This document shows, in pieces, positions 49,648 to 62,884 of a stretch of DNA of 64,000 nucleotides. How positions within the stretch are numbered: the stretch's first letter is position 1; every line of letters starts with the position of its first letter. Origin of the DNA: Paramoeba atlantica (lineage: Eukaryota; Protista; Discosea); the NCBI GenBank assembly GCA_977017575.1, contig CDRNVI010000148.1, positions 62,001 through 126,000 of the forward strand, read 5' to 3'. The position numbers and the translations under genes were made by a program. The notes beneath the pieces were generated by a model that was not told the origin of the DNA, did no database searches, and worked only from the letters and a program-made list of their open reading frames with translations.

Positions 49648-49938
49648 TTATTCAAATTTGTAATAATGTCTTTTGATCTTTGGAGGGTGGCCGTTCTTCT
49701 TTTCCACCACTTTTCCCTCCTCCTTCTTATCCCCTTCCTTCTTCTCGATCTTAAACGAATATCCATGAGCCATCGCATCTTCCATTTCGTCACGTTTACC
49801 ACGAGTCTTCTTCTGTTGCTGAAATTTCTGGTACCTCTTCAAAAGTCTAGTCGAACCCTCTTTACCAAAGACAATATGGAACTTCTCATCTTTCTTGAAG
49901 CACAAGGGTTGAGGTGGTGGTACCACCTCTTCTTCGTC
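49648..49938 (-). pseudogene. Orphan 3' half of an unknown gene, cut off at a rearrangement junction
   Basis: Coding-like LDEEEVVPPPQPLCFKKDEKFHIVFGKEGSTRLLKRYQKF..AHGYSFKIEKK..YYKFE-stop with no start. It abuts directly on the antisense array-gene fragment at 49939. Confidence 0.5.
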
Positions 49939-50065
49939 AAGAAATTGTGAATGGTTTTGGGAATTTATTGATGATGATGAAGACGAAAATGCTATTCACC
50001 TTCGAATCTGTAAATTTTTTGAAGAGAACATCCAACAATGTCAAATCAAGCCAGCAAAGAGGTGA
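49939..50065 (+). pseudogene. 3' fragment of the ~155-aa array gene family
   Basis: RNCEWFWEFIDDDEDENAIHLRICKFFEENIQQCQIKPAKR-stop; the 5' three quarters are missing. Confidence 0.85.
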
Positions 50066-50540: not shown

Positions 50541-50851
50541 TTTTTTTTTGGAGTTTTGATTTGAGTTTCGAGAAATTGTCGAGTGATAAAGGATCGAGAG
50601 AGTCCTCTCTTTGCGACAACCTTGCGAAAAAGAAGAACCTTGCCAAACGAAAAACGAGAACGACACCTTTTCAGAATGGTGCGTTTTTATATTTTATTTT
50701 GTATTATTTTTTGTCAAAAGCAAAAATACAAATCATCCAACACTCATTTGAAAGTAGTACTCCCGGAAAGGAAAACGCGTTTTGGCTTTTTCCTTCTCTC
50801 TCTTCTTGGCGATCAAAGAAGAAAATCCCCTTCGATATCTTTTGTGTTGAG

Positions 50852-53014
50852 ATGCAGTTACGAGGGGGAAAAAGGAAGAGAGAGGAGAATGAGTTGGAGA
50901 AAGAAGAAAAAGTTAAAGAGAATGAGATTCAAGGAGAAACAAGAAGGATAAAGAAGGGTGAGCTTGATGAAAAAACCGTTGGGGAAGGTTTTCGATGTGG
51001 AATCTGTTTTGAGATAATGAGTTGGGAGAGATCGCCAAGAGTGTTGCCATGTGGACATTCTTTTTGTTCTGAATGCCTCTCCAAGCTTCTTCATATTCAA
51101 CAACAACAACAACAACCCCAAACACCACCCAGCTCCTCTCTTCATGGAGATTCTGATGTCCCTCCTCACTTTCCAGAACCACAAATCCCTCATCGCCTCT
51201 CTCGAACCACCCCTCCAACTCATCTGATTGATAAACGAGTAACTCTTCCCACTCCCCTCTCCTCCTCCTCCACCTCCTCCTCCTCTTCTTCGATTTCATT
51301 TTCATTTTCTTTTTCTTCAGGAGAGGTTGGAACAAGTAGTGTGGGAAAGGGTAATTGTCCTTTTTGTCGAAGTGTAATTGAGTGCAAGTCGATCGAATCT
51401 CTCCCCCACAATTATTTAATCCCTGAAACGATTGATGTTCTTCTTTCTTCTCAAGTATTATCTTTAGATCATTCACCAGGTTTGAGTTTTGAATTATTTT
51501 TCTCTCCTTTTTCTTTGTCTCTGATCTTTTTCTCAATTTCGTGAATTTGGAACAGAAGAAAAATCGAGATGCGTCAACTTTAAAAGATGTGGGGAGCAAA
51601 CATCGATGTATTGCCCCAATTGCGAAGTATTCATTTGTGATTCCTGTAATTTATCTCATTCTTCAAGCGTCTTTACTCAGAATCACAAACGGCAACAACA
51701 ATCTTCTTATTCTGCTGGTGGTGGTTCAAATTCGTTCGAAACAATCAAGAAGAAACATTGTTCTGAACACTCTTCTGAGTTTGTGTTTGGGTATTGTTTT
51801 GGGTGTTCTGTTTTTGTTTGTGGTTGTTGTATTTTGGGGAGTCATAGTGAACATAAGGAAATGATATTTTCACTTGCTGAAAGTGCGAAAAAAAGAAGAG
51901 ATCAAGTTGCAAAGATTGGAGATGATCTGAGGAGAAGAATGCAAGTTATTGAAAAGATACAACAGGAGAATGTAGATGAAATCAAGTCATTGAAGGAGAA
52001 ATTAATGAAGAAAGAGAAGGAGCAAAAAGAATTAGAGTTGGAAATTGGGGACTTGAAGATGAGACATGATACAATTGGTCGATTGTCTAATATGCCGACA
52101 GATGATTCGATTTTGAATGAAAATATCTTTTCAACACTTCTCCAAACTGCCAATGATCTTGTGGATGAGATGATCCAAAAGAAAGAAACATTCGAGGAGA
52201 GGGAAGATACTCGTGAACTTCAAGTTTCCTTTCCTTGGGAAGGATCTCCATGGGGAGTCAGCGCGAATAGTGGAGGGAACATTCTTGTGGCTGAAAGGAT
52301 GAAAAATGTAACGCTGAGGAATCGAGAAAATGGATCTCTTATTCGGACATTTGACTCTCTTAATCGCTCTTTTGGATTATTTGATGATCCAATCGATGTT
52401 TCATGTGGAACAGAGGATCAAGTTGTTGTCCTTGATACCGCGAAATGTCAAGTTGTGATATTCAACAAAGAAGGCCACTATGTCAGGTCCTTTGGATCAT
52501 GTGGTTCTCGATATGGCGAATTTAAAGGTCCTTGTAGCGTGGTAGTTGATAAAGAAAATCAAATTATTGTTGCTGATAGTGGTAATCACCGAATTCAAGT
52601 ATTTGGATCTGATGGGAGATTTATTCGATGTTTTGGGAGATAGAAGGGCAGTTCTTCTCTCCTACTGGAGTGGCGATTGATCGAGATGGACATCTTGTTA
52701 TTTCGGACCTTGGAAATCATCGAATTCAAGTGATGGGAATTGAAGGGAATTTTCTTTTTGCTTTTGGAAGTTACGGACCAAAAGATTCTGAATTGAGTTT
52801 TCCACAGAGCGTTTCAGTGGATGGAAAAGGTCGGATTGTTGTTTGTGATTCAGGAAATGAACGGATGTGTGTTTTTGAAAAAGATGGAACTTTTCTTTTT
52901 TCTTTTGGTGATGGTAAACTGAACAGTCCTCGTTGTGTTGCGAGTGATAGATATGGCCATATTATTTCTGATTGTTTTTTGGAAGGTGAAAAGACTGTTC
53001 AATTGTGGTTGTAA
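50852..53014 (+). pseudogene. TRIM-NHL gene (RING - B-box x2 - coiled coil - NHL beta-propeller) with a frameshift in the NHL repeats
   Basis: RING CGICFEIMSWERSPRVLPCGHSFC..CPFC. B-boxes and the intron after the RING match TRIM A/B. NHL repeats: FKGPCSVVVD..IIVADSGNHRIQVFGSDGRFIRCFG, FFSPTGVAID..VISDLGNHRIQV, SFPQSVSVD. The frame changes with TAG at 52641-52643 (about 10 nt short of the repeat consensus). This may be an assembly error. Confidence 0.8.
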
Positions 53015-53335
53015 ATTTCTGTCAAATTTTCTCAGTTTAAATTAGGATGTCATGGAAAGTGTTGAATCAAATTTCAAAAGAAGGCAGTTGGGAATAATTC
53101 CCACAAATTCAAGGAAACCAAACCAAAAAACCAATTGAATGAAATTTCATTTTCTAAATTTGAAATCATGGGTTTGCTTTCAAAAAATGATCCCAACCAA
53201 AATGAAATCACAACAAACTTTTTCTCAGTTGTAAAAATTGGCTTCCTTGGTGTCCTTTTTGGGTGGTATTTCAAATTTGGTTTTTCGTTTCAGCTTTTTT
53301 GGTTTTTGGTTTTTGGTTTTTTGGTTTTGGAGAGG

Positions 53336-53800
53336 ATGAGTGATGACGAACAGTGGAAGGCAAGAATTTTAGTGAGCAAGACTTGGGGTGAAGAATTGAA
53401 GGGGTTAAAAGAAAGAACATCGAAAGTGCTCTTCTTCGACCAACAAAAACTTTCTGAAGAAGAACTTATTCTCCCTTTTGATGGAGTTCTTTATTTCCCT
53501 CCAGGTGGTCTTCATTTTCTTTCAACAGAGGAACTCGATGAAGAAGCGGAAAGTGTTGAGAAACTTGGTTGTGTTGTTGGTGGACTTGAAGGAAAATGTT
53601 TGGGAATTTGGGTTGATTCGGATGATTGGGATTTGAAAGATACAATGGTAGAGAAACTTCGTTTGAAAGAAAGAAATTTTGAGTGGTGTTGGGATTATGT
53701 CGATAATGGCGAGAAAGAAAATGATCTCCACATTCGATTATGTCAATTTTTTGAAGAGAATACCAAACAACAATGTCAAATCAAGCCAGCAAAGAGGTGA
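53336..53800 (+). CDS. Array gene copy 1 (154 aa, unknown; predicted flavodoxin-like alpha/beta fold)
   Basis: KARILV..KLSEEELILPFDGVLYFPP..LEGKCLGIWV..KLRLKERNFEWCWDY..CQIKPAKR. Confidence 0.85.
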   Translation: MSDDEQWKARILVSKTWGEELKGLKERTSKVLFFDQQKLSEEELILPFDGVLYFPPGGLHFLSTEELDEEAESVEKLGCVVGGLEGKCLGIWVDSDDWDLKDTMVEKLRLKERNFEWCWDYVDNGEKENDLHIRLCQFFEENTKQQCQIKPAKR

Positions 53801-53862
53801 TGATGAATTGAGGATTTTTGTTTATTTTTGTTTTGTTTATTGAATTGTGTTGAGAATGAAAC

Positions 53863-53913
53863 TTGACATTCTTAGTTGTTGGGGTTTTCCATGAGAATTT
53901 ATCCAACTCCATG
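53863..53913 (-). pseudogene. Relic of the 3' end of the beta-trefoil gene in an array spacer
   Basis: GACATTCTT..GGGGTTTTCCAT..ATCCAACTCCATG matches 50172-50223 (HGVGFHDNGKPKEPKNV) in the same position relative to the family stop codon. Confidence 0.6.
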
Positions 53914-54074
53914 GAAAAGGTGGAGCCAACTTGCAAAAATGAAATCCCAACAAACCAAAAATGAAATCCCAACAAACTTTTTCTCGGTTGTAAAAATTCG
54001 TGTCTTTTTGGAGCGTTTCAAATTTGGTTTTCTGTTTTCTGTTTTCGTTTTCTCTCTTTTGGTTTTGGGGAAGG

Positions 54075-54542
54075 ATGAGTGATGGTGGTGAAGAGGAATG
54101 GAAGGCAAGAATTTTAGTGAACAGGACTTGGGCTGACGAAGTGAAGAACTTAAATGAAAGTACATCGAAAGTGATCTTCTTCGACCAACAAAAACTTTCT
54201 GAAGAAGAACTTGCTCTCCCTTTTGATGGAGCTCTTTTTTTGCCTCCGGCTGATCTTCGTCTTCTTTCAACAGAGGATCTTGATGAAGAAGTGGCAACAT
54301 TTGAGAAATTTGGTTGTGTGGTTGGACTTGAAGGAAAGTGTTTGGAAATTTGGGTTGTGGGGGCTGATCGGGATATGAAAGATACAATAGGAGAGAAACT
54401 TTGTTTGAAAGAAAGAAATTGTGAGTGGTGTTGGGATTATATTGGCGATGATGAGAGGATTGACGATCTCTATCTTCGAGTTGGTAAATTTTTTGAAGAG
54501 AATACTCAACAACAATGTCAAATCAAACCAGCAAAAAGGTGA
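54075..54542 (+). CDS. Array gene copy 2 (155 aa)
   Basis: Intact ORF with family motifs. Confidence 0.85.
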   Translation: MSDGGEEEWKARILVNRTWADEVKNLNESTSKVIFFDQQKLSEEELALPFDGALFLPPADLRLLSTEDLDEEVATFEKFGCVVGLEGKCLEIWVVGADRDMKDTIGEKLCLKERNCEWCWDYIGDDERIDDLYLRVGKFFEENTQQQCQIKPAKR

Positions 54543-54718
54543 TTTTTATTGAATCATCACTTTGAATGGGATTGATTTTGAACTGATTCACCATTTTGAA
54601 TGTCTTTTTTCTTCATTGTTTTGTGTTGAGAAAAAGTTTTGCAATTCATTTTCAAATTTTTTGTTGAAAGAGAAAGAGAAAGAGAAAGAGAAAGAAAAGA
54701 ACAAACTTTTTGGATTTT

Positions 54719-54748
54719 GACTTCAAGAATTTTAGAGTGCTATTTTTT
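54719..54748 (+). promoter_or_regulatory. Conserved upstream motif GACTTCAAGAATTTTAGAGTGCTATTTTTT about 40-75 nt before the ATG of array copies 3-7 and 9 (candidate promoter element)
   Basis: Recurs at about 54719, 55423, 56129, 56826, 57521 (variant) and 60911 while adjacent A/G-rich tracts vary. It may simply reflect recent duplication. Confidence 0.35.
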
Positions 54749-54785
54749 TCTGTTTTTGTTTTCTCTCTTTTGGTTTTGGGGAAGA

Positions 54786-55259
54786 ATGAGCGAGGGTGAT
54801 GAAGAGGAATGGAAGACAAGAATTTTAGTGAACAAGAATTGGAGTTACCTTGTGAGGAGGTTAAATGATAGTACATCGAAAGTGATCTTCTTAATCCAAG
54901 AAAAACTCTCTGAAGAAGAACTTGTTCTCCCTTTTGATGGAGCTCTTTATTTCCCTCGAACTGGTATTCGTACTTATTCAACAGAGGAACTCGATGAAGA
55001 AGTGGAAACATTTAAGAAATTTGTTCGTTTTGTTGGTGGAATTGAAGGAAAGTGTTTGGGGATTTGGGCTGAGGTGGATGATCGGGGTATGAAAGATACA
55101 ATGTTTGAGAAACTTCGTTTGAAAGAAAGAAATTGTGAGTGGTTTTGGGATTATATTGGCGATGATGGTGAGAGGATTGAGGATGTCTACCTTCGAATCT
55201 GTAAATTTTTTGAAAAGAATACTCACCAACAATGTCAATTCAAACCAGCAAAAAAGTGA
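54786..55259 (+). CDS. Array gene copy 3 (157 aa)
   Basis: Intact ORF with family motifs. Confidence 0.85.
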   Translation: MSEGDEEEWKTRILVNKNWSYLVRRLNDSTSKVIFLIQEKLSEEELVLPFDGALYFPRTGIRTYSTEELDEEVETFKKFVRFVGGIEGKCLGIWAEVDDRGMKDTMFEKLRLKERNCEWFWDYIGDDGERIEDVYLRICKFFEKNTHQQCQFKPAKK

Positions 55260-55495
55260 TTTTTATTGATCATCATTTTGAATGAGATTGATTTTGAACT
55301 GATTCACCATTTTGAATGTCTTTTCTCTTCATTGTTTTGTGTTGAGAAAAAGTTTTGCAAATTTTTTAAATTTTTTGTTGAAACGAAAGAGAAAGAGAAG
55401 GGAGAACAAACTTTTTGGATTTGACTTCAAGAATTTTAGAGTGCTATTTTTTTCTGTTTTTGTTGTTTTCTCTTCTCTTTTGGTTTTGGGGAAGG

Positions 55496-55966
55496 ATGAG
55501 TGATGGTGGTGAAGAGGAATGGAAGGCAAGAATTTTAGTTAACAAGAATTGGAGTTCCCTTGTGAGGGGGTTAAATGATTGTACATCGAAAGTGATCTTC
55601 TTAATCCAAGAAAAACTCTCTGAAGAAGAACTTGCTCTCCCTTTTGATGGAGCTCTTTATTTCCCTCGAACTGGTATTCGTACTTTTTCAACAGAGCAAC
55701 TCGATGAAGAAGTGGAAACATTTAAGAAATTTGTTCGTTTTGTTGGTGGAATTGAAGGAAAGTGTTTGGCAATTTGGGTTGATAAGAATGATCGGGGTAT
55801 GAAAGATACAATGTTTGAGAAACTTCGTTTGAAAGAAAGAAATTGTGAGTGGTGTTGGGATTATATCAATGATGGTGAGACGATCAAGGATGTCTACTAT
55901 CGAATCTGTAAATTTTTTGAAGAGAATATTCAACAACAATGTCAAATCAAACCAGCAAAAAGATGA
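55496..55966 (+). CDS. Array gene copy 4 (156 aa)
   Basis: Intact ORF with family motifs. Confidence 0.85.
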   Translation: MSDGGEEEWKARILVNKNWSSLVRGLNDCTSKVIFLIQEKLSEEELALPFDGALYFPRTGIRTFSTEQLDEEVETFKKFVRFVGGIEGKCLAIWVDKNDRGMKDTMFEKLRLKERNCEWCWDYINDGETIKDVYYRICKFFEENIQQQCQIKPAKR

Positions 55967-56192
55967 TTTGGATTGATCATCATTTTGAATGAGATTGATT
56001 TTGAACTAATTCACCACCTTGAATGCCTTTTCTCTTTGTTGTTTTGTGTTGAGAAAGGTTTTGAAATTTTTTGGGTGAAACGAAAGAGAAAGAGAAAGAG
56101 AAAGGAAAGAACAAACTTTTTGGATTTTGACTTCAAGAATTTTAGAGTGCTATTTTTTTCTGTTTTTTTCTCTCTTTTGATTTTGGGGAAGA

Positions 56193-56657
56193 ATGAGTGG
56201 CGAAGAAGAATGGAAAGCAAGAATTTTAGTGAATGAGAATTGGACTTCCCTTGCGAATGGGTTAAATGGATGTACTTCGAAAGTGGCCTTCTTAATTCAA
56301 CAAAAACTTTCTGAAGAAGAACTTGCTCTCCCTTTTGATGGAGCTCTTTATTTCCCTCCAGATGATCTTCGTTTTTTTCCAACAAAGAGACTTGATGAAG
56401 AAGTGGAAAAGTTTGAGAAATTAGTTTCTTTTGTTGGTGGAATTGAAGGAAAATGTTTGGCAATTTGGGCTGATAAGAATGATCGGGATATGAAAGATAC
56501 AATGGGAGAGAAACTTCGTTTGAAAGAAAGAAATTGTGAATGGTTTTGGGATTATATTGCTGATGGCGAGAAGATTGAGGATGTCTATCCTCGAATCTGT
56601 AAATTTTTTGAAGAGAATACTCAACAACAATGTCAAATCAAACCAGCAAAAAGGTGA
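56193..56657 (+). CDS. Array gene copy 5 (154 aa)
   Basis: Intact ORF with family motifs. Confidence 0.85.
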   Translation: MSGEEEWKARILVNENWTSLANGLNGCTSKVAFLIQQKLSEEELALPFDGALYFPPDDLRFFPTKRLDEEVEKFEKLVSFVGGIEGKCLAIWADKNDRDMKDTMGEKLRLKERNCEWFWDYIADGEKIEDVYPRICKFFEENTQQQCQIKPAKR

Positions 56658-56899
56658 TTTTTGTTGATCATCATTTTGAATGAGATTGATTTTGAACTGA
56701 TTCACCATTTTGAATGTCTTTTCTCTTTGTTGTTTTGTGTTGAGAAAAAGTTTTGCAATTCATTTTAAATTTTTTGTTGAAACGAAAGAGAAAGAGAAAG
56801 AAAAGAACAAACTTTTTGGGTTTTGACTTCAAGAATTTTAGAGTGCTATTTTTTTCTGTTTTTGTTTTCGTTTTCTCTCTCTTTTGGTTTTGGGGAAGG

Positions 56900-57367
56900 A
56901 TGAGTGATGGTGGTGAAGAGGAATGGAAAGCAAGAATTTTAGTGGACGAGAATCTGGATTACCTTGTGAAGAGGTTAAATGAAACTACATCGAAAGTGAT
57001 CTTCTTAATCCAAGAAAACCTTTCTGAAGAAGAACTTGCTCTCCCTTTTGATGGAGCTCTTTATTTGCCAAAGGATCTTCATTTTTTTTCAACAAAGAGA
57101 CTTGATGAAGAAGTGGAATCATTTGAGAAATTTGTTTCTTTTGTTGATGGACTTGAAGGAAAGTGTTTGGCAATTTGGGTTGATGCAGATGATTGGGATA
57201 TGAAAGATACAATGGTGGAGAAACTTCGTTTGAAAGAAAGAAATTGTGAGTGGTGTTGGGATTATCTTCATTTTAACGAGAGGAGTTATGCTGTCTACCT
57301 TCGAATCTGTAAATTTTTTGAAGAGAACACTCAACAACAATGTCAAATCAAACCAGCAAAAAGGTGA
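56900..57367 (+). CDS. Array gene copy 6 (155 aa)
   Basis: Intact ORF with family motifs. Confidence 0.85.
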   Translation: MSDGGEEEWKARILVDENLDYLVKRLNETTSKVIFLIQENLSEEELALPFDGALYLPKDLHFFSTKRLDEEVESFEKFVSFVDGLEGKCLAIWVDADDWDMKDTMVEKLRLKERNCEWCWDYLHFNERSYAVYLRICKFFEENTQQQCQIKPAKR

Positions 57368-57595
57368 TTTTTGTTGATCCTCATTTTGAATGAGATTCAC
57401 CATTTTGAATGTCTTTTCTCTTCGTTGTTTTGTGTTGAGAAAAAGTTTTGCAATTCATTTTCAAACTTTTTGTTGAAACGAAAGAGAAAGAGAAGGAAAA
57501 GAACAAACTTTTTGGATTTTGACTTCAAGATTTTTAGAGTGCTATTTTTTTCTGTTTTTGTTTTCGTTTTCTCTCTCTTTTGGTTTTGGGGAAGG

Positions 57596-58066
57596 ATGAG
57601 TGATGGTGGTGAAGAGGAATGGAAGGCAAGAATTTTAGTGAGCGAGAATATGGAGTACCTTGTGAGGAGGTTAAATGAAAGAACATCGAAACTGATCTTC
57701 TTAATCCAACAAAAACTTTCTGAAGAAGAACTTGCTCTCCCTTTTGATGGAGCTCTTTATTTCCCTCCGGATGCTCTTCGCACTCTTTCAACAGAGGATC
57801 TTGATGAAGAAGTGGAAGAATTTGAGAAATTTGTTTCTTTTGTTGGTGGAATTGAAGGAAAGTGTTTGGCAATTTGGGTTGATGTGAATGATCGGGAGAT
57901 GAAAGATACAATGGGAGAGAAACTTCGTTTGAAAGAAAGAAATTGTGAGTGGTTTTGGGATTATATTGGTGGTGATGAGAGTGATGAGGATGTCTATCCT
58001 CGAATCTGTAATTTTTTTGAAGAGAACACCCATCAATGTCAGATTAAACCAGCGAAGAGGATGTAA
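57596..58066 (+). CDS. Array gene copy 7 (156 aa; altered 3' end next to the GPCR insertion)
   Basis: Intact ORF ending KPAKRM-TAA; the normal spacer is replaced downstream. Confidence 0.85.
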   Translation: MSDGGEEEWKARILVSENMEYLVRRLNERTSKLIFLIQQKLSEEELALPFDGALYFPPDALRTLSTEDLDEEVEEFEKFVSFVGGIEGKCLAIWVDVNDREMKDTMGEKLRLKERNCEWFWDYIGGDESDEDVYPRICNFFEENTHQCQIKPAKRM

Positions 58067-58364
58067 TCGAAAATACTTGGGTCTTTTCCTTCCTCCCCCC
58101 AAGTGCAAACCTTCGGTGTTGGTTTGCAAAAATCTCTCTTGAAAGATTTGAATCCTTTTTTTTTTGCTTTTCTTTTCAAACAACAAAGAGACAAAAAATC
58201 AAGAATACTCAAAAAAAATTGTTGATTGAATTTCTCTTCAAAATTCAATGAAAACAAAAAACTCTTCCATCAAAAATAAATAAATTGATTTTCATTGTTT
58301 TCGGTTCTCCTGAAGGTGAGGGTGAATCAGATTATTGATTGATTCATGGAAAAATCAATCTGGT

Positions 58365-60032
58365 TTAGTGGCCATCAGAAGTAGAAGAAGAATCTCGATT
58401 GATAACTAATTCTTGGTAACTGTTCTTTGATGAAGTCAATACTTTCCTTGAAAAAATGAACTCTTTCCACCAAAGAGAGAAATAGGGATTGGTCCAAAAG
58501 AGAATCATACTCGCACATCCAGGGAACAATGATGTGATTAAAAAGAAAGTAATAAAGGAATATCCATGATCATACTTTCGTTCACATGGTGGCAGATTAG
58601 TTTGAGGGTGAGAAGCGACACAATCCATGAATTGAACGATGTTTCGATTTGAGAGTTTCTGCTCTGTTACAAGGTATAAAACGACAAGAAAGAGGAGCAT
58701 CACACCACAAATTAAAAAGAGGATTTGGTCGGCAGGTTGTTTGATAAACCGAACAAAAAATGTGGTATATGGTCTAAAAATGGGTAAGAAAAAAGGGAAG
58801 AAGGAGAAATAGAGAAACCCCCCAAACAAAATGAAAGTTTTTTAATATCCAACAACTAAAAAAAGGAAAAAATAATTGACGAGATTGAAAAAACCTTATT
58901 GTCTGGCAGAACAAGTTGAAGGAGACAAGAACCCAATGAGTAAATCCAAGATGGAGAAAGAAGACAAAAAGCGAAAACTGAATCGCAGATCGTGTTGAGA
59001 GTTGGAGGTGAGAAACTGATTTCCAATAATTCTTTTTCCCTTCACAAACAAAAGATTTTGGTCCACCTATTCTCAAAAAATCAAATCTCAATGAGAGAAT
59101 TTGTTTTCCAAGAAAATTACCAGAGAAAAAAGACAAACCGACAAAGGTTGACCATTGAAGACATAAAAATGCAAGAGCAAAACTCCCACCAGAAAGAAAA
59201 ACAACATTATTTGGATACCTTTTTAATGAAGAAAGATCAAAAAAAGAAAATAGAGTTAACTTTCTCCAAAAAAAAACAAAAACTGGGGGCAATCTTAAAT
59301 GAAACAACGATTCAAAAAATTGAGAAAATAGAGTTTTACCTTAAATCAGTCATCAGAGAAAGAGGAATCAATGAAACTACAATCGAGAATAAAGAAAACC
59401 ATGTGAACACAAAACTGATAATTCGAACCCAATTCTCCAAAGATTGTCCAAAAAGATATTGATAACATTCAACAACACATTCATCATTATCATCAAAAGT
59501 AAACGGATCTGGACAACATTCAATTCTCTCTTTTGATCCATTTAAACATGTTTCAACCCCAATTGGTGTTTCTTTCACTTTATCAATCTGTCTTTCAACT
59601 TCACTTTCACATCCATTTGTTGTTGGAGAGGGAGAGGGAGAAGGAGAGAGTGAAGGAGAGAGGGAACAATTGAGTTGAAAATCAACAGAACAAAGAGAAG
59701 AAACTTGAAGACAAGATTCTTGTTCCAAACAATGTTGTTCTTGAAAAGAAGAAGACTCACACGAAAATCCTCCAAACATCAATTGGCAATAATAAAACAA
59801 AAAAGGTCTTCGACAACTTTTGAACCATTCGAACGTTTGAAACGACCAAAGAAACATTCTGATTGAAGAAATCCTCTTGTTCGTTCTCTTCAATCGATAC
59901 ATTCCCAGTCAACACAACCGAACATTCATTTTCAAGAGAATAATGAAAACACCCTTTTACGTCATCACAAAAAGAACAAGGAAGAAGAACAAGAGCAATA
60001 AAGAACCAACAAAAGAGAAACCCCAGACGCAT
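58365..60032 (-). pseudogene. Frizzled/Smoothened-like (Fsl-type) GPCR gene, apparently damaged
   Basis: Signal peptide and Cys-rich domain (C..YSLENEC..; CRRPFLFYYCQLMF..C). TM1 followed by R/YPNNVVFLS (Frizzled RYP.R.IIFLS position), TM3 FFLHLGFTHWVLV, TM6-ECL3 FMDCV..C, TM7. There is a frame change near 59840-59880 and no sequence found for most of TM4-TM5. Confidence 0.7.
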
Positions 60033-60293
60033 CCACCACAAAACAACAAAACGAAAGAAAAAGAACAACCAAAAAAAACAAAGAGAAGTGAGTTCCCACT
60101 CCCCCAATAAAAATGAATGAAAAGGTTCGCACGACAAAATAATCTGTGATAAAACCTTTTATTTCTAAATAAGAAAAGAGAGAAAAAGCGGAAATCAAAC
60201 CTATTTTATCTAAATAAGAATCAAAAAAAAGTTGTTTTTCTTGCTTTTTCTGTTTTCGTTTTCGTTTTCTCTCTCTTTTGGTTTTGGGGAAGG

Positions 60294-60757
60294 ATGAGTG
60301 ATGGTGGTGAAGAGGAATGGAAGGCAAGAATTTTAGTGAGCATGACTTGCGGTGAGGAGGAGTCCTTGTGGAGTTAAATGAAAGTACATCGAAAGTGATC
60401 TTCTTCGACCAACAAAAACTTTCTGAAGAAGAACTTGCTCTCCCTTTTGATGGAGCTCTTTATTTCCCTCCAGATGGTCTTCGTTTTCTTTCAACAAAGA
60501 GACTTGATGAAGAAGTGGAAAAGTTTGAGAAATTTGTTTCTTTTGTTGGTGGAATTGAAGGAAAATGTTTGGCCTTTTGGGTTGATTCGGATGATTGGGG
60601 GATGAAAGATACAATGTTTGAGCAACTTCGTTTGAAAGAAAGAAATTGTGAGTGGTTTTGGGATTATCTTGATGATGAGGATGTCTATCCTCGAATCTGT
60701 AAATTTTTTGAAGAGAAGACCCAACAACAATGTCAAATCAAACCAGCAAAAAGGTGA
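60294..60757 (+). pseudogene. Array gene copy 8, frameshifted in the first variable block
   Basis: ILVSMTCGEEESLWS-TAA in the start frame; the rest (ELNESTSKVIF..KPAKR) is in another frame. Confidence 0.85.
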
Positions 60758-60982
60758 TTTTTGTTGATCATCATTTTGAATGAGATTGATTTTGAACTGA
60801 TTCACCATTTTGAATGTCTTTTCTCTTTGTTGTTTTGTGTTGAGAAAAAGTTTTGCAATTCATTTTCAAACTTGAAAGAAAGAAAGAAAGAAACACTCTT
60901 TTTGAATTTTGACTTCAAGAATTTTAGAGTGCTATTTTTTCTGTTTTCGTTTTCGTTTTCTCTCTTTTGGTTTTGGGGAAGA

Positions 60983-61450
60983 ATGAGTGATGGTGGTGAA
61001 GAGGAATGGAAAGCAAGAATTTTAGTGAGCATGACTTGGGGTGACGAAGTGAAGAACTTAAATGAAAGAACATCGAAAGTGATCTTCTTCGACGAACAAA
61101 AACTTTCTGAAGAAGAACTTGTTCTCCCTTTTGATGGAGTTCTTTATGTACCTGCAACTTATCTTTGGGATCTTTCAACAGAGGAACTCGATGAAGAAGC
61201 GGACAGATTTGAGAAACTTGGTTGTGTTGTTGGTGGACTTGAAGGAAAATGTTTGGCAATTTGGGTTGATTCGGATGATTGGGATTTGAAAGATACAATG
61301 GTAGAGAAACTTCGTTTGAAAGAAAGAAATTTTGAGTGGTGTTGGGATTATGTTGAAAGGGGCGAGAGAGAAAATCAACTCCACATTCGATTATGTCAAT
61401 TTTTTGAAGAGAATACTCAACAATGTCAAGTCAAACCAGCAAAGAGGTGA
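60983..61450 (+). CDS. Array gene copy 9 (155 aa)
   Basis: Intact ORF with family motifs. Confidence 0.85.
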   Translation: MSDGGEEEWKARILVSMTWGDEVKNLNERTSKVIFFDEQKLSEEELVLPFDGVLYVPATYLWDLSTEELDEEADRFEKLGCVVGGLEGKCLAIWVDSDDWDLKDTMVEKLRLKERNFEWCWDYVERGERENQLHIRLCQFFEENTQQCQVKPAKR

Positions 61451-61521
61451 TGATGAATTGAGGATCGTTTTTTGTTTGTTTTTGTTTTGTTTATTGAATT
61501 GTGTTGAGAATGAAACTTGGT

Positions 61522-61573
61522 GGCATTCTTTGGGTATTTGGGGTTTTCCATTATCATGGAATCCAACTCCATG
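61522..61573 (-). pseudogene. Second relic of the beta-trefoil gene 3' end in an array spacer
   Basis: CATTCTTTGG..TTTCCATTATCATGGAATCCAACTCCATG is nearly identical to 50174-50223. Confidence 0.7.
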
Positions 61574-61715
61574 TAAAAGCCTTTCAAATTCAAGGAGACC
61601 AAACCAAAATGAAATCACAACAAACTTTTTCTCAGTTGTAAAAATTGGCTTCGTGTCTTTTTGGCGCGTTTCAAATTTGGTTTTCAGTTTTTGGTTTTGG
61701 TTTTTGGTTGGGAAG

Positions 61716-62177
61716 ATGAGTGATGAAGAAGAACGGAAAGCAAGAATTCTTGTGAACATGAATTGGTACGCCTTAGTGGCCCGGTTAAATGAAAGTACAT
61801 CAAAATTGGTCTTCTTAATGGCACAAAAATTTTCTGAAGAAGAACTTGCTCTCCCTTTTGATGGAGTTCTTTATTTACCTCCAGCTGATCTTTGGGATTT
61901 TTCCACAACGAAAATTGAGGAAGAAGTGGAAAGATTTGAACAATTTATTCACTCTGTGGATGGAATTGAAGGAAAGTCTTTGGCCATTTGGGTTGATTCG
62001 GATGATTGGGCAATGAAAGATACATTGGTCGAGAAACTTCGTTTGGAAGAAAAAAATTGTGAGTGGTGTTGGGATTATGTTAGACGTGATGAGAAAGACA
62101 ATGCTATTCACCTTCGATTATGTAAATTTTTTGAAGAGAACACCCAACAATGTCAAATCAAACCAGCAAAGAGGTGA
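61716..62177 (+). CDS. Array gene copy 10 (153 aa, most divergent)
   Basis: Intact ORF with family motifs. Confidence 0.85.
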   Translation: MSDEEERKARILVNMNWYALVARLNESTSKLVFLMAQKFSEEELALPFDGVLYLPPADLWDFSTTKIEEEVERFEQFIHSVDGIEGKSLAIWVDSDDWAMKDTLVEKLRLEEKNCEWCWDYVRRDEKDNAIHLRLCKFFEENTQQCQIKPAKR

Positions 62178-62884
62178 TGATGAATGGTGATAAAACTTCT
62201 TTAAACTCGATTTTTACCCTTTTTACTCTTGAGAATGGACAGACAAAGACAAGGAATCATAAATGAATCCCAACAAAAATGAAAATAACAACGAACTTTT
62301 TCTAAGTTGTCAAATTGGCTTCGCGTCTTATAGGGGTGTTTCAAATCTGGTTTTCATTCTTCTCTCTCTTTTTTGGTTTTTGGTTTTTGGTTTTTGGTTT
62401 TTGGTTTTTGGTTTTGAAGATGAAGATGAAGATCGTTAAATCCATTCAAATGAAGAACTTTTCGATTATACGAAGCAGAATCGGAAACAAGAAAGTCGAG
62501 AGCAACAAACAGAATTCCTCCAATCAACTGATGAAGAAAATTGGCCAAAGGATCAAACCCATAATAATAGGGAAAACATGTACTCTCTACTGAATAGAGA
62601 AAGATGGAAAAGGTGTACAACCAATTCACCACTCCCATTTCAGAAAAAGAAGAAGGAAAACGAAAACAAAAACAAAACAATTTTGAGGCTAAAAATAGGG
62701 CGTTAAAAATTATTAAAGGTGAGTCAGAAAATTCATTTTTCTTATTTTTTTGGGGTTTTTCCCAGAATGAAAATGATGGAATTGGATGGACTATTGAGCT
62801 TCATACGGCGATTGATCTTCAAAAGACACTTCTCTTCTTTTGAAAAAAAAAACAAAAAAAGACAAAACCCCTCTCGTCTTCTTT

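Follow-up and report, generated by a model that had tools for sequence, protein, structure and literature searches.

Germline recognition families such as the TRIM5-type SPRY loops and the LRR surfaces of plant NLRs occur in tandem arrays with a frozen scaffold, display dN/dS >1 in a few surface loops and undergo some block exchange. The same features are seen in an array of the amoeba Paramoeba atlantica, which differs from these families in having a predicted (beta-alpha)5 scaffold and in encoding a bare 155-aa domain without a signalling or effector domain. To our knowledge, no diversifying repertoire described so far is built on the (beta-alpha)5 fold. Proteins of the flavodoxin-like class (flavodoxin, CheY/REC, TIR) have the same size of ~150 residues, built of five beta-alpha units with element lengths near those of CheY, and bind FMN, a phosphoryl group or partners at the C-terminal edge of the sheet, where the variable loops of the array sit. 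We give an even chance to the reading that the array is a germline repertoire of diversified cofactor-less binding modules with a constant docking side.

The window, by which we mean the whole stretch of DNA analyzed, comprises 64,000 nt (GCA_977017575.1, contig CDRNVI010000148.1, positions 62,001-126,000 of the forward strand). Open reading frames and alignment reveal nine intact copies of 153-157 aa, a further copy with a shifted frame and a 3' relic, all on the plus strand (Table 1). The original prediction counted ten intronless copies. Nine of them are intact, but in the tenth a net +5-nt indel within variable block 1 disrupts the frame, which reads through from 60368 onward. The scaffold motifs quoted as near-invariant were all found in the copies, whose pairwise identity is 64-85%, with 55 invariant columns. 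The repeating unit is ~700 bp long: start-to-start distances are 689-739 bp with one exception, a 2.7-kb gap at 58.1-60.3 kb occupied by unrelated minus-strand ORFs. Copies align end to end, without intron-like gaps, with a 159-aa protein from the short contigs of a JGI data set, and the genes are therefore intronless, as had been proposed.

Table 1. Coordinates of the array copies, their subfeatures and neighboring elements in the window
Feature	Position	Strand	Description	Basis or remark
Copy 1	53336..53800	+	intact, 154 aa	ORF and alignment
Copy 2	54075..54542	+	intact, 155 aa	ORF and alignment
Copy 3	54786..55259	+	intact, 157 aa	ORF and alignment
Copy 4	55496..55966	+	intact, 156 aa	reference for residue numbers and structure model
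Copy 5	56193..56657	+	intact, 154 aa	ORF and alignment
Copy 6	56900..57367	+	intact, 155 aa	ORF and alignment
Copy 7	57596..58066	+	intact, 156 aa	ORF and alignment
Copy 8	60294..60757	+	pseudogene or assembly error	
Copy 9	60983..61450	+	intact, 155 aa	ORF and alignment
Copy 10	61716..62177	+	intact, 153 aa	most divergent copy of the window
Variable block 1 (aa 16-25, reference copy)	55541..55570	+	post-strand-1 loop and first turns of helix 1	
Variable block 2 (aa 56-64, reference copy)	55661..55687	+	post-strand-3 loop	
Variable block 3 (aa 95-101, reference copy)	55778..55798	+	post-strand-4 loop and start of helix 4	
Variable block 4 (aa 123-134, reference copy)	55862..55897	+	post-strand-5 loop, with indels	
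Tail IKPAKR, reference copy	55946..55963	+	K-P-A invariant in 43/43 aligned members	
Example inter-copy spacer	55967..56192	+	conserved non-coding	spacer alignment
3' relic of family member	49937..50065	+	last 41 codons and stop	upstream of TRIM-NHL gene
TRIM-like neighbor gene (context)	50561..53014	+		ORFs; Pfam NHL and zf-B_box

Simple GA/GAAA repeats form a purine-rich stretch in the example spacer, which also contains the conserved element GTGTTGAGAA and a T-rich tract with interspersed G that ends in AG directly before the ATG. The spacer alignment of the window revealed no ORF conserved between copies. Multiplication of the genes would proceed in units of 700 bp, with unequal crossing-over as the simplest mechanism; coding scaffold and spacer stay alike among copies. 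Genome-wide (45.7 Mb), at least 60 matches are found in about ten arrays, most of them with open frames. Relatives are few, 20-33 among billions of proteins. Searches of Pfam and PDB sequences left the family without a match, and the claim that no described family is alike holds in sequence and profile searches. The family is lineage-restricted and consists of small single-domain alpha/beta proteins; those of the array are probably cytosolic.

We modeled the reference copy with AlphaFold2, using an alignment of 43 diverse family members. The (beta-alpha)5 fold put forward in the original prediction was obtained with confidence (pLDDT 88.7, pTM 0.83; all five models at 87-89), in the element order E11-15, H20-28, E33-37, H43-47, E52-55, H66-82, E90-94, H97-109, E118-122 and H130-149. 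The modeled domain would thus comprise five parallel strands and five helices. Amino acid entropy among the copies peaks at residues 16-25, 58-64, 95-101 and 123-135 of the reference copy, coinciding with all four of the variable blocks that had been proposed, and each block begins right after a predicted strand (1, 3, 4 and 5), as claimed. Judging by the strand topology, the four blocks would form a single face. Block 3 encloses a nearly invariant Asp99 in the family alignment. Family-wide entropy averages 0.98 bits in the pre-strand loops and tail versus 2.33 bits in the post-strand loops.

The NG86 estimates of dN/dS are 1.64 for block 1, 2.81 for block 2 (aa 58-64), 2.57 for block 3, 0.59 for block 4 and 0.65 for the scaffold. 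In blocks 2 and 3, dS (0.175 and 0.147) is the same as in the scaffold (0.152), which argues for selection and against local hypermutation. Comparison of models M2a and M1a yielded an LRT of 123, with omega 3.9 at 25% of sites, whereas simulated M1a nulls gave LRT values of 0-7. The M2a sites include 17, 19, 20, 21, 24 and 25 in block 1, 56, 58, 59, 62 and 63 in block 2, and 96, 97 and 100 in block 3. Of the thirty sites with a posterior >0.9 for omega > 1, 21 lie within the 39 residues following strands 1, 3, 4 and 5, an enrichment with an odds ratio of 14 (p 5e-9). In an independent subfamily, whose 11 copies share 30-38% identity with subfamily A, the LRT is 111 and omega 8, and the selected sites again follow strands 1, 3 and 4. 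The expectation of dN/dS >1 in the blocks is thus upheld for blocks 1-3 and fails for block 4 (segment LRT 3.5, p 0.17), which is variable yet looks neutral.

Young, weakly constrained duplicates might produce a similar picture if their surface loops drift while gene conversion homogenizes scaffold and spacer, the blocks then reflecting tolerance rather than adaptive recognition. The family is indeed weakly constrained overall (whole-gene omega 0.89 under M0, scaffold omega 0.62-0.65), and the neutral, indel-bearing block 4 fits such drift. The codon tests presuppose no recombination, and recombination inflates M2a tests; the backbone of the tree has a support of 11-37%, which points to exchange between copies, and some blocks are common to copies in patchwork fashion. 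An omega > 1 class is also still detected in a control restricted to scaffold columns (LRT 41), meaning that the test is not block-specific or that selection extends beyond the blocks. However, dN exceeds dS 1.6- to 2.8-fold in blocks 1-3, and the mean pairwise difference per nucleotide is ~4 times higher in the variable blocks (0.32) than in the non-coding spacers (0.082), which drift should not exceed. The signal also persists when each segment is given its own tree (LRT 36.7, 38.2 and 16.3 for the segments of blocks 1-3), recurs at the homologous loops of the independent subfamily, and coexists with strong constraint at about half of the sites (omega 0.10-0.15). We therefore consider drift alone unlikely.

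The tail, with the consensus [ILVF]KPAK[RK], is nearly invariant in the family and extends beyond it. In the genome, KPAKR followed by a stop is found at 49 places, KPAKRx and stop at 59, and KPAKK and stop at 12 (>100 in all), against 0, 0 and 3 for the respective reversed-pattern controls. The same tail terminates open frames in which Pfam detects SPRY and Laminin_G_3 domains. One tail-bearing frame lies directly 3' of an ankyrin open frame and overlaps it in a different reading frame; the tail probably closes ankyrin proteins too, and tentatively we also place it on PH-like and LRR-like proteins. Its synonymous codons differ between families, indicating that the peptide is conserved and not the DNA. 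In the SOCS-box families, one C-terminal box is attached to SPRY, ankyrin, WD40, SH2 and Rab-like GTPase domains. The tail resembles this arrangement as a common C-terminal element on unrelated binding domains, an analogy of layout only: the SOCS box is a 40-residue helical box, whereas the tail has just 6-8 residues (the consensus plus 0-2 more). Being so common genome-wide, the tail may serve generally in protein sorting or turnover (as a degron) rather than as a repertoire-specific handle.

These occurrences of the tail bear on a reading in which intragenomic conflict replaces the sensing of outside agents, the proteins being antidotes or immunity proteins, or serving as targets or decoys for a toxin, selfish element or meiotic driver that evolves fast. 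Tandem amplification, rapid loop evolution, restriction to a small lineage and the lack of a conserved enzymatic site are typical of such systems. Against it, the 700-bp units include no partner toxin or paired gene, the spacers hold no conserved ORF, and a tail shared with SPRY and laminin-G proteins, and probably with ankyrin proteins, suggests a wider cellular pathway. This makes intragenomic conflict improbable.

Structure searches place TIR, CheY/REC, flavodoxin and G-domain/pseudo-GTPase folds in a tie at Z 8-10, and the motifs of these classes are absent from the family; as far as its sequence tells, the domain is devoid of any cofactor, nucleotide or catalytic motif. The best Foldseek match is CENP-M (4wau_A, E 8e-5, TM 0.54), then Arf and Arl proteins, with flavodoxins at E about 1e-4 and TM 0.43-0.52. 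When the Foldseek list is re-aligned, Gi-alpha comes out first with its Ras-like domain (Z 9.8, 150 residues, rmsd 4.0). The exhaustive search is led by 4c6t_A, the TIR domain of RPS4/RRS1, at Z 10.0 and an rmsd of 3.2 A, colinear with the model over 126/141 residues. G-alpha and Arf structures match at Z 9-9.8, Fbx4 at Z 9.2, and REC domains at Z 8.0-8.2 and TM 0.54-0.61; a shape search of the ESM Atlas returned mainly REC domains and one flavodoxin. The particular kinship with flavodoxin suggested earlier is not borne out, as TIR, G-alpha/Arf, CENP-M and REC match as well or better and no sequence profile provides a link. The flavodoxin-like class as a whole has no sequence similarity to the family and matches it in structure no more strongly than G domains do. 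The family is without the FMN-phosphate loop of flavodoxin, the aspartate pocket of REC and a family-wide TIR glutamate. The replacement of the FMN-phosphate loop had been predicted correctly: variable block 1 takes this post-strand-1 position, which is also the P-loop site of G-proteins.

The Foldseek ranking, the Gi-alpha and Fbx4 matches and the hypervariable block at the P-loop position would suit a pseudo-GTPase or degenerate G-domain adaptor (cf. CENP-M and the G-like domain of Fbx4) that has lost nucleotide binding and acts as a structural subunit of a complex. CENP-M and the pseudo-GTPases share with the array family a small alpha/beta domain that lacks an enzymatic motif and in which the P-loop position is degenerate. 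However, G domains have six strands with an antiparallel strand-2/strand-3 hairpin, and pseudo-GTPases a six-stranded mixed sheet, whereas secondary structure suggests five parallel strands here: the four-residue link between helix 1 and strand 2 and the helix-bearing, 14-residue link between strands 2 and 3 would fit an all-parallel five-stranded sheet and not a G domain. The ESM Atlas matches likewise point elsewhere, no Ras-family Pfam match was found, and CENP-M is a single-copy kinetochore subunit, as opposed to a hypervariable multigene family. We hold this reading to be quite unlikely.

Plants and bacteria have stand-alone TIR proteins that act via oligomerization or enzymatic activity, and the BB loop after strand 2 is the key loop of TIR domains. 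That the array encodes an oligomerizing or NAD-cleaving TIR-like signaling domain, with variable loops tuning assembly or inhibitor escape, agrees with the top exhaustive match, the (beta-alpha)5 order and the length (~150 aa), but is very improbable: the Z of 10 is just 1-2 units over unrelated G-domain, REC and SDR matches, no member matches Pfam TIR models even at E up to 10, a TIR_2 profile search of the whole genome gave zero matches, no acidic residue is conserved family-wide where helix 3 begins (positions 71-72 carry E in most members, but P0025, P0031 and P0035 have K, I, A or M there), and the loop corresponding to BB is among the most conserved parts of subfamily A.

In the preferred reading of a diversified binding repertoire, diversifying selection would push apart the loops after strands 1, 3 and 4 at the C-terminal sheet edge, while the loop after strand 5 would drift, and the opposite edge (the pre-strand loops) and the [ILVF]-K-P-A-K-[RK] tail would be held constant. 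The variable edge of each paralogue would bind a different, fast-changing target, and the constant edge and tail would connect all paralogues to the same partner or destination in the cell. The array might serve in sensing prey, pathogens or viruses. One possible RNA run contained no match to the array at 95% likeness; three of the four listed runs that hold the array look like DNA. Between the 3' relic and copy 1 lies the TRIM-like gene, with a B-box and NHL repeats, in which a RING-like Cys motif was noticed by eye only.

On its plus strand, between 53.3 and 62.2 kb, the window carries nine intact open reading frames (ORFs) of 153-157 aa and a tenth copy whose frame is broken by a net +5-nt indel within the first variable block. 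The original prediction of ten copies therefore holds for their number, with nine of them intact. The unit period is 689-739 bp, and a single gap of 2.7 kb, about 2.2 kb of it with minus-strand ORFs, holds unrelated ORFs without Pfam matches. The copies share 64-85% identity and 55 invariant columns. In the reference copy (copy 4), amino acid entropy is highest at residues 16-25, 58-64, 95-101 and 123-135, which recovers the four variable blocks previously proposed, and nearly every copy has its own combination of loops. The B-box/coiled-coil/NHL gene beside the array consists of two overlapping ORFs, owing to a frameshift or a short intron within the NHL propeller. One of the ORFs in the gap combines a Ser/Pro-rich stretch, a Cys-rich module and hydrophobic spans, and from its sequence looks like a membrane receptor.

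Coordinates of the array, its neighbors and related features on other contigs (L numbers denote separately read DNA stretches with their own numbering)
Feature	Location	Strand	Remark
3' relic of the family, 41 codons	window 49937-50065		upstream of the B-box/NHL TRIM-like gene
B-box/NHL TRIM-like gene	window 50561-53014		directly precedes copy 1
Overlapping ORFs of the B-box/coiled-coil/NHL gene	window 51606-52643 and 52628-53014
T-rich tract ahead of ATG, example	window 53056-53335		280 nt
Reference copy (copy 4)	window 55496-55966	plus	source of residue numbers
Copies 5 and 6	window 56193-57367	plus	near-twins in L043 (G000:C188:46500-54600), the array on contig C188
ORFs in the gap	window 58365-60137	minus	no Pfam matches
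Conserved post-stop stretch	window 61449-61518		just past the stop of copy 9
Counterpart of the post-stop stretch	L045:1278-1347		end of a related species' contig
Tail example	L053:3847-4239
Tail example	L064:3725-4126
Tail example	L056:961-1686	minus
Tail example, further	L052:1797-1988
Tail example, further	L078:146-367	minus
Terminal mini-exon	L042:1008-1139		before the first array on contig C148
Terminal mini-exon	L043:4227-4400		within the array on contig C188
Repeat-bearing contig C87	L047 (G000:C87:18500-21900)		deviant GC

The codon analyses used 20 intact members of the close subfamily, taken from the window and its two sister arrays. By the tree-free Nei-Gojobori method, dN/dS is 1.64, 2.81 and 2.57 in blocks 1, 2 and 3, but 0.59 in block 4; the scaffold stands at 0.65. 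Synonymous divergence in blocks 2 and 3 (dS 0.175 and 0.147) is equal to that of the scaffold (0.152), which speaks against a locally raised mutation rate. Per-nucleotide difference amounts to 0.32 in the blocks, 0.094 in the scaffold and 0.082 in the non-coding spacer for the six copies with alignable spacers. A custom-written codon-likelihood test with fixed topology and scaled branch lengths gives an omega of 0.89 under M0 and favors M2a over M1a (LRT 123, p 2e-27), placing 25% of sites at omega 3.9; six data sets simulated under the M1a null yield LRT values of 0-7. The sites with omega > 1 at a posterior above 0.9 number 30, and 21 of them fall within the 39 post-strand residues (odds ratio 14, p 5e-9).

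Backbone support of the tree is only 11-37%, and some blocks are common to copies in a patchwork. As the copies have probably exchanged sequence, the test was rerun on the four quarters of the gene, each with its own tree. The resulting LRT values of 36.7, 38.2, 16.3 and 3.5 indicate that the signal is retained in blocks 1-3 and lost in block 4, so that the expected excess of dN/dS over 1 applies to the first three blocks and fails in the fourth. A four-gamete test on block classes finds one violation only, which implies that patchwork exchange is modest at this resolution. The scaffold-only control is unclean (LRT 41; sites 29, 34, 37, 68, 75, 81, 107, 137 and 146), reflecting either selection on some helix surfaces or recombination that still inflates the test. 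We therefore place weight on the tree-free dN/dS, the spacer comparison, the segment trees and a second subfamily. This independent group of 11 copies on other contigs (subfamily C, 30-38% identity) returns an LRT of 111 and an omega of 8, with the selected sites likewise located after strands 1, 3 and 4. With recombination and the scaffold-only control as caveats, the paralogues thus display omega > 1 in loops on a conserved scaffold, as expected of a diversifying repertoire. Drift combined with concerted evolution, which could accommodate the patchwork of blocks and would be harder to reconcile with the tree-free dN/dS and the spacers, is a rather unlikely explanation of this pattern. Conflict inside the genome is another conceivable explanation of fast-evolving loops in tandem paralogues, and we regard it as improbable.

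An AlphaFold2 model based on the ten window copies alone has a pLDDT of 60 and was set aside. The model based on 43 members with 26-85% identity reaches a pLDDT of 88.7 and a pTM of 0.83, all five models being at 87-89. It comprises strand 11-15, helix 20-28, strand 33-37, a short helix 43-47, strand 52-55, helix 66-82, strand 90-94, helix 97-109, strand 118-122 and helix 130-149. Foldseek against the PDB ranks CENP-M at the top (E 8e-5, TM 0.54), followed by many flavodoxins, Arf-type GTPases and receiver domains; on re-examination of the Foldseek list, the Ras-like domain of Gi-alpha comes first (Z 9.8, 150 residues, rmsd 4.0). The exhaustive VIA structure search is headed by the RPS4/RRS1 TIR domain (Z 10.0, rmsd 3.2 A over 126 residues), with G-alpha, Arl, Fbx4 and receiver domains below at Z 8-9, and the ESM Atlas shape search returns chiefly receiver domains (TM 0.54-0.61), plus a flavodoxin. 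The matches are nearly tied, and best Z scores of 7-8 are common without kinship according to the notes of the search tool; the model can therefore be placed only in the broad three-layer alpha/beta/alpha class. No single fold family is singled out by the searches of four structure libraries. Of the flavodoxin-like (beta-alpha)5 fold originally predicted, the five alternating strands and helices stand in a confident model, but TIR, G-domain and receiver matches tie with the flavodoxins.

The connections between the modeled elements would favor an all-parallel CheY-like layout over the strand-2/strand-3 hairpin of G domains: helix 1 is linked to strand 2 by four residues, and strand 2 to strand 3 by 14 residues that bear a helix. 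Matches to flavodoxin, REC and TIR domains are consistent with five parallel strands; the G-domain matches are as strong. All four blocks start right after model strands 1, 3, 4 and 5, in agreement with the proposal that they follow the C-ends of strands. The C-ends of the strands in a parallel sheet share one edge, where folds of this type usually bind their ligands, and the topology of the model suggests that the four blocks are all located there.

Sequence comparisons support the claim that the family is undescribed. Pfam yields no match for three copies at E up to 1 and no consistent match for 43 diverse members at E up to 10, PDB sequences searched with one copy and with a profile give nothing below E 0.07, and the best score of an ESM Atlas feature search (0.79) provides no usable lead. 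No description of the family was found in the literature on the KPAKR motif, diversifying flavodoxin-like folds and amoeba hypervariable arrays. At E up to 10, the 43 members leave the Pfam profiles of flavodoxin (PF00258), receiver (PF00072), TIR (PF01582 and PF13676) and Ras (PF00071) domains unmatched. The T/S-x-T-G-x-T FMN-phosphate loop is missing after strand 1 of the copies, where the residues following I-L-V (NKNWSSLVRG, SKTWGEELKG, DENLDYLVKR etc.) form the hypervariable block 1; the suggested replacement of the loop by this block is thus borne out. As for the acidic pocket of receiver domains, strand 3 ends in L-Y-F-P, without Asp, and the residues after strand 1 are variable. The position of the G-domain P-loop also corresponds to block 1: GxxxxGK[ST] and NKxD occur in none of the copies, and D-K-N-D of the reference copy is unconserved among them. 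A pseudo-GTPase adaptor is an improbable reading. A TIR-like enzyme, to which the top VIA match would point, is very doubtful: the TIR_2 profile has no match in six frames of the whole genome, the aligned members appear to have no family-wide TIR glutamate, and E71 and E72, invariant in subfamily A (the close copies), are substituted in the distant members P0025, P0031 and P0035 of the sequence alignment.

The side of the model that would lie away from the blocks is conserved. Mean entropy among the 43 members is 0.98 bits in the pre-strand loops and C-terminal tail, against 2.33 bits in the post-strand loops. The pre-strand loops bear E-E-E-W-K-A-R, L-S-E-E-E-L-x-L-P-F-D-G, G-G-I-E-G-K and R-L-K-E-R-N/G-C-x-W, and invariance is limited to the columns of Leu54 and of K-P-A in the tail. 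The tail is also found beyond the family. In the genome, KPAKR followed by a stop occurs at 49 places (0 in the control), KPAKRx at 59 (0) and KPAKK at 12 (3), with family members making up about half of the tail-motif places. In a broader form, [ILVFMY]-K-P-A-K-[RK] with 0-2 further residues ends open frames at more than 100 places, and reversed-pattern controls do so almost nowhere. Outside the family, open frames that end in the tail contain SPRY domains recognized by Pfam, several of which are arrayed in tandem, and one Laminin_G_3 domain. Another tail is found immediately 3' of an ankyrin open frame identified by Pfam, which it overlaps in a different reading frame, and the two are probably one gene. 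Two more tail loci look ankyrin-like by eye and one looks LRR-like, and a PH domain match at a tail locus is weak, below the Pfam cut-off. The tail is frequently encoded on a short terminal exon, after a pyrimidine tract. Different families use different codons for it, which shows conservation of the peptide rather than of a DNA element. On contig C140, arrays of the family are found together with tail-bearing LRR-like and SPRY genes, all within 65 kb of one another. A terminal mini-exon ending in KRAKNIKPAKRS, seen before the first array of C148 and within the array of C188, belongs to another tail-bearing gene.

From its sequence distribution, the tail may be a genome-wide C-terminal signal. 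The gene product is probably a bare single domain in the cytosol, with an acidic N-terminus and neither signal peptide nor membrane span seen by eye. Most plausibly, the three loops under diversifying selection on the variable edge would bind different, fast-changing targets, and the opposite, constant edge would, together with the tail, connect all paralogues to a common partner or place. As a tentative possibility, more than 100 genes of unrelated binding folds would form one recognition system, their shared [ILVF]KPAK[RK] end plugging into a single effector such as a ubiquitin ligase or sorting receptor, with the alpha/beta family as its most expanded and fastest-diversifying arm. This set would include SPRY, laminin-G-like, probably ankyrin, perhaps LRR-like and PH-like domains, and the cofactor-less (beta-alpha)5 domain. 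SOCS-box families, where one C-terminal element is found on SPRY, ankyrin and GTPase-like domains, offer a parallel in layout only; a sorting signal or a degron would be an equally good reading of the tail. If the tentative reading is true, the alpha/beta family would be the first hypervariable immune-type repertoire on a flavodoxin/TIR-like fold.

Tandem, diversifying germline repertoires are of an already known kind; the novelty here lies in the scaffold, in the bare-domain architecture and in a tail that recurs genome-wide. We know of no other use of the (beta-alpha)5 fold as a germline binding repertoire. If our reading is right, a unicellular eukaryote possesses such a repertoire on a small (beta-alpha)5 domain. 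A new scaffold would then join the short list of natural hypervariable binders, offering protein engineers a compact, possibly cofactor-free frame of 155 residues and providing a handle on how protists discriminate prey, symbionts and viruses. The shared C-terminal tail is a testable entry point toward a common partner of more than 100 proteins.

At least 60 matches to a profile built from the window copies are present in the 45.7-Mb assembly to which the window belongs, most of them with open frames. Close arrays are three: two on C148, the window's among them, and one on C188. More distant subfamilies are located on C140, C190, C168, C178 and C207, and an additional one, found via the tail motif, on C139. 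An exhaustive search of 1.84 billion cluster representatives yields 20 proteins at E up to 0.001, and a word-seeded search of 5.8 billion proteins yields 22-33 family proteins. The relatives outside the genome, all small and nameless, were found in a handful of ENA assemblies and a single JGI data set. The distant member P0035 originates from a different sample and shows at most 31% identity to anything in this genome, which indicates that the family spans more than one organism. Its locus (L044, a 10.6-kb contig of ENA ERZ26869290) is gene-dense, with an mRNA cap methyltransferase, a thioredoxin, an ankyrin protein and several orphan ORFs, and could be part of a compact protist genome or of a large DNA virus. 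Window copies 5 and 6 have near-twins in the array on C188 (bootstrap 100); the two are adjacent in the window and separated by three other copies on C188. The latter represents either a segmental duplicate that has been rearranged or a haplotype of different structure. GC content is 0.31-0.43 in 2-kb bins of the window and about 0.35 in the array. Contigs C87, C2, C3, C12, C30 and C56 have a GC of 0.44-0.49, and C87 carries a repeated 3.5-6-kb unit with Cys/His-rich ORFs; given contigs of such deviant composition, the assembly may be derived from more than one organism.

About half of the codons are strongly constrained (omega 0.10-0.15), which provides indirect evidence that the family genes are translated. 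Public runs of 2023-24 that contain the array look like DNA in the three runs examined, having long contigs, over which the array is fragmented, and covered spacers. One run with this species label that may be RNA yields none of the array at 95% likeness, a result uninformative on expression either way. The one hint of expression is a 159-aa member on two short contigs of 1.1 and 1.3 kb in JGI data set 3300017035, whose accession range we take to be that of marine protist transcriptome assemblies. The two contigs are identical across about 1,040 nt and diverge upstream, and look like isoforms from a transcript assembly. They are only 77-83% identical to the copies here, and therefore come from a relative.

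Ahead of the ATG, every copy has a T-rich tract interspersed with G and ending in ...GGGGAAG, which resembles a splice acceptor, possibly for a spliced leader; the tract is unspliced in the related species' contig. A 70-nt stretch immediately after the copy 9 stop has 97% identity to the last 70 nt of the related species' contigs, exceeding the identity of the coding sequences and indicating a conserved 3' element. Every spacer of the array retains its core, GTGTTGAGAA, and the element may represent a 3'-end or RNA-processing signal.
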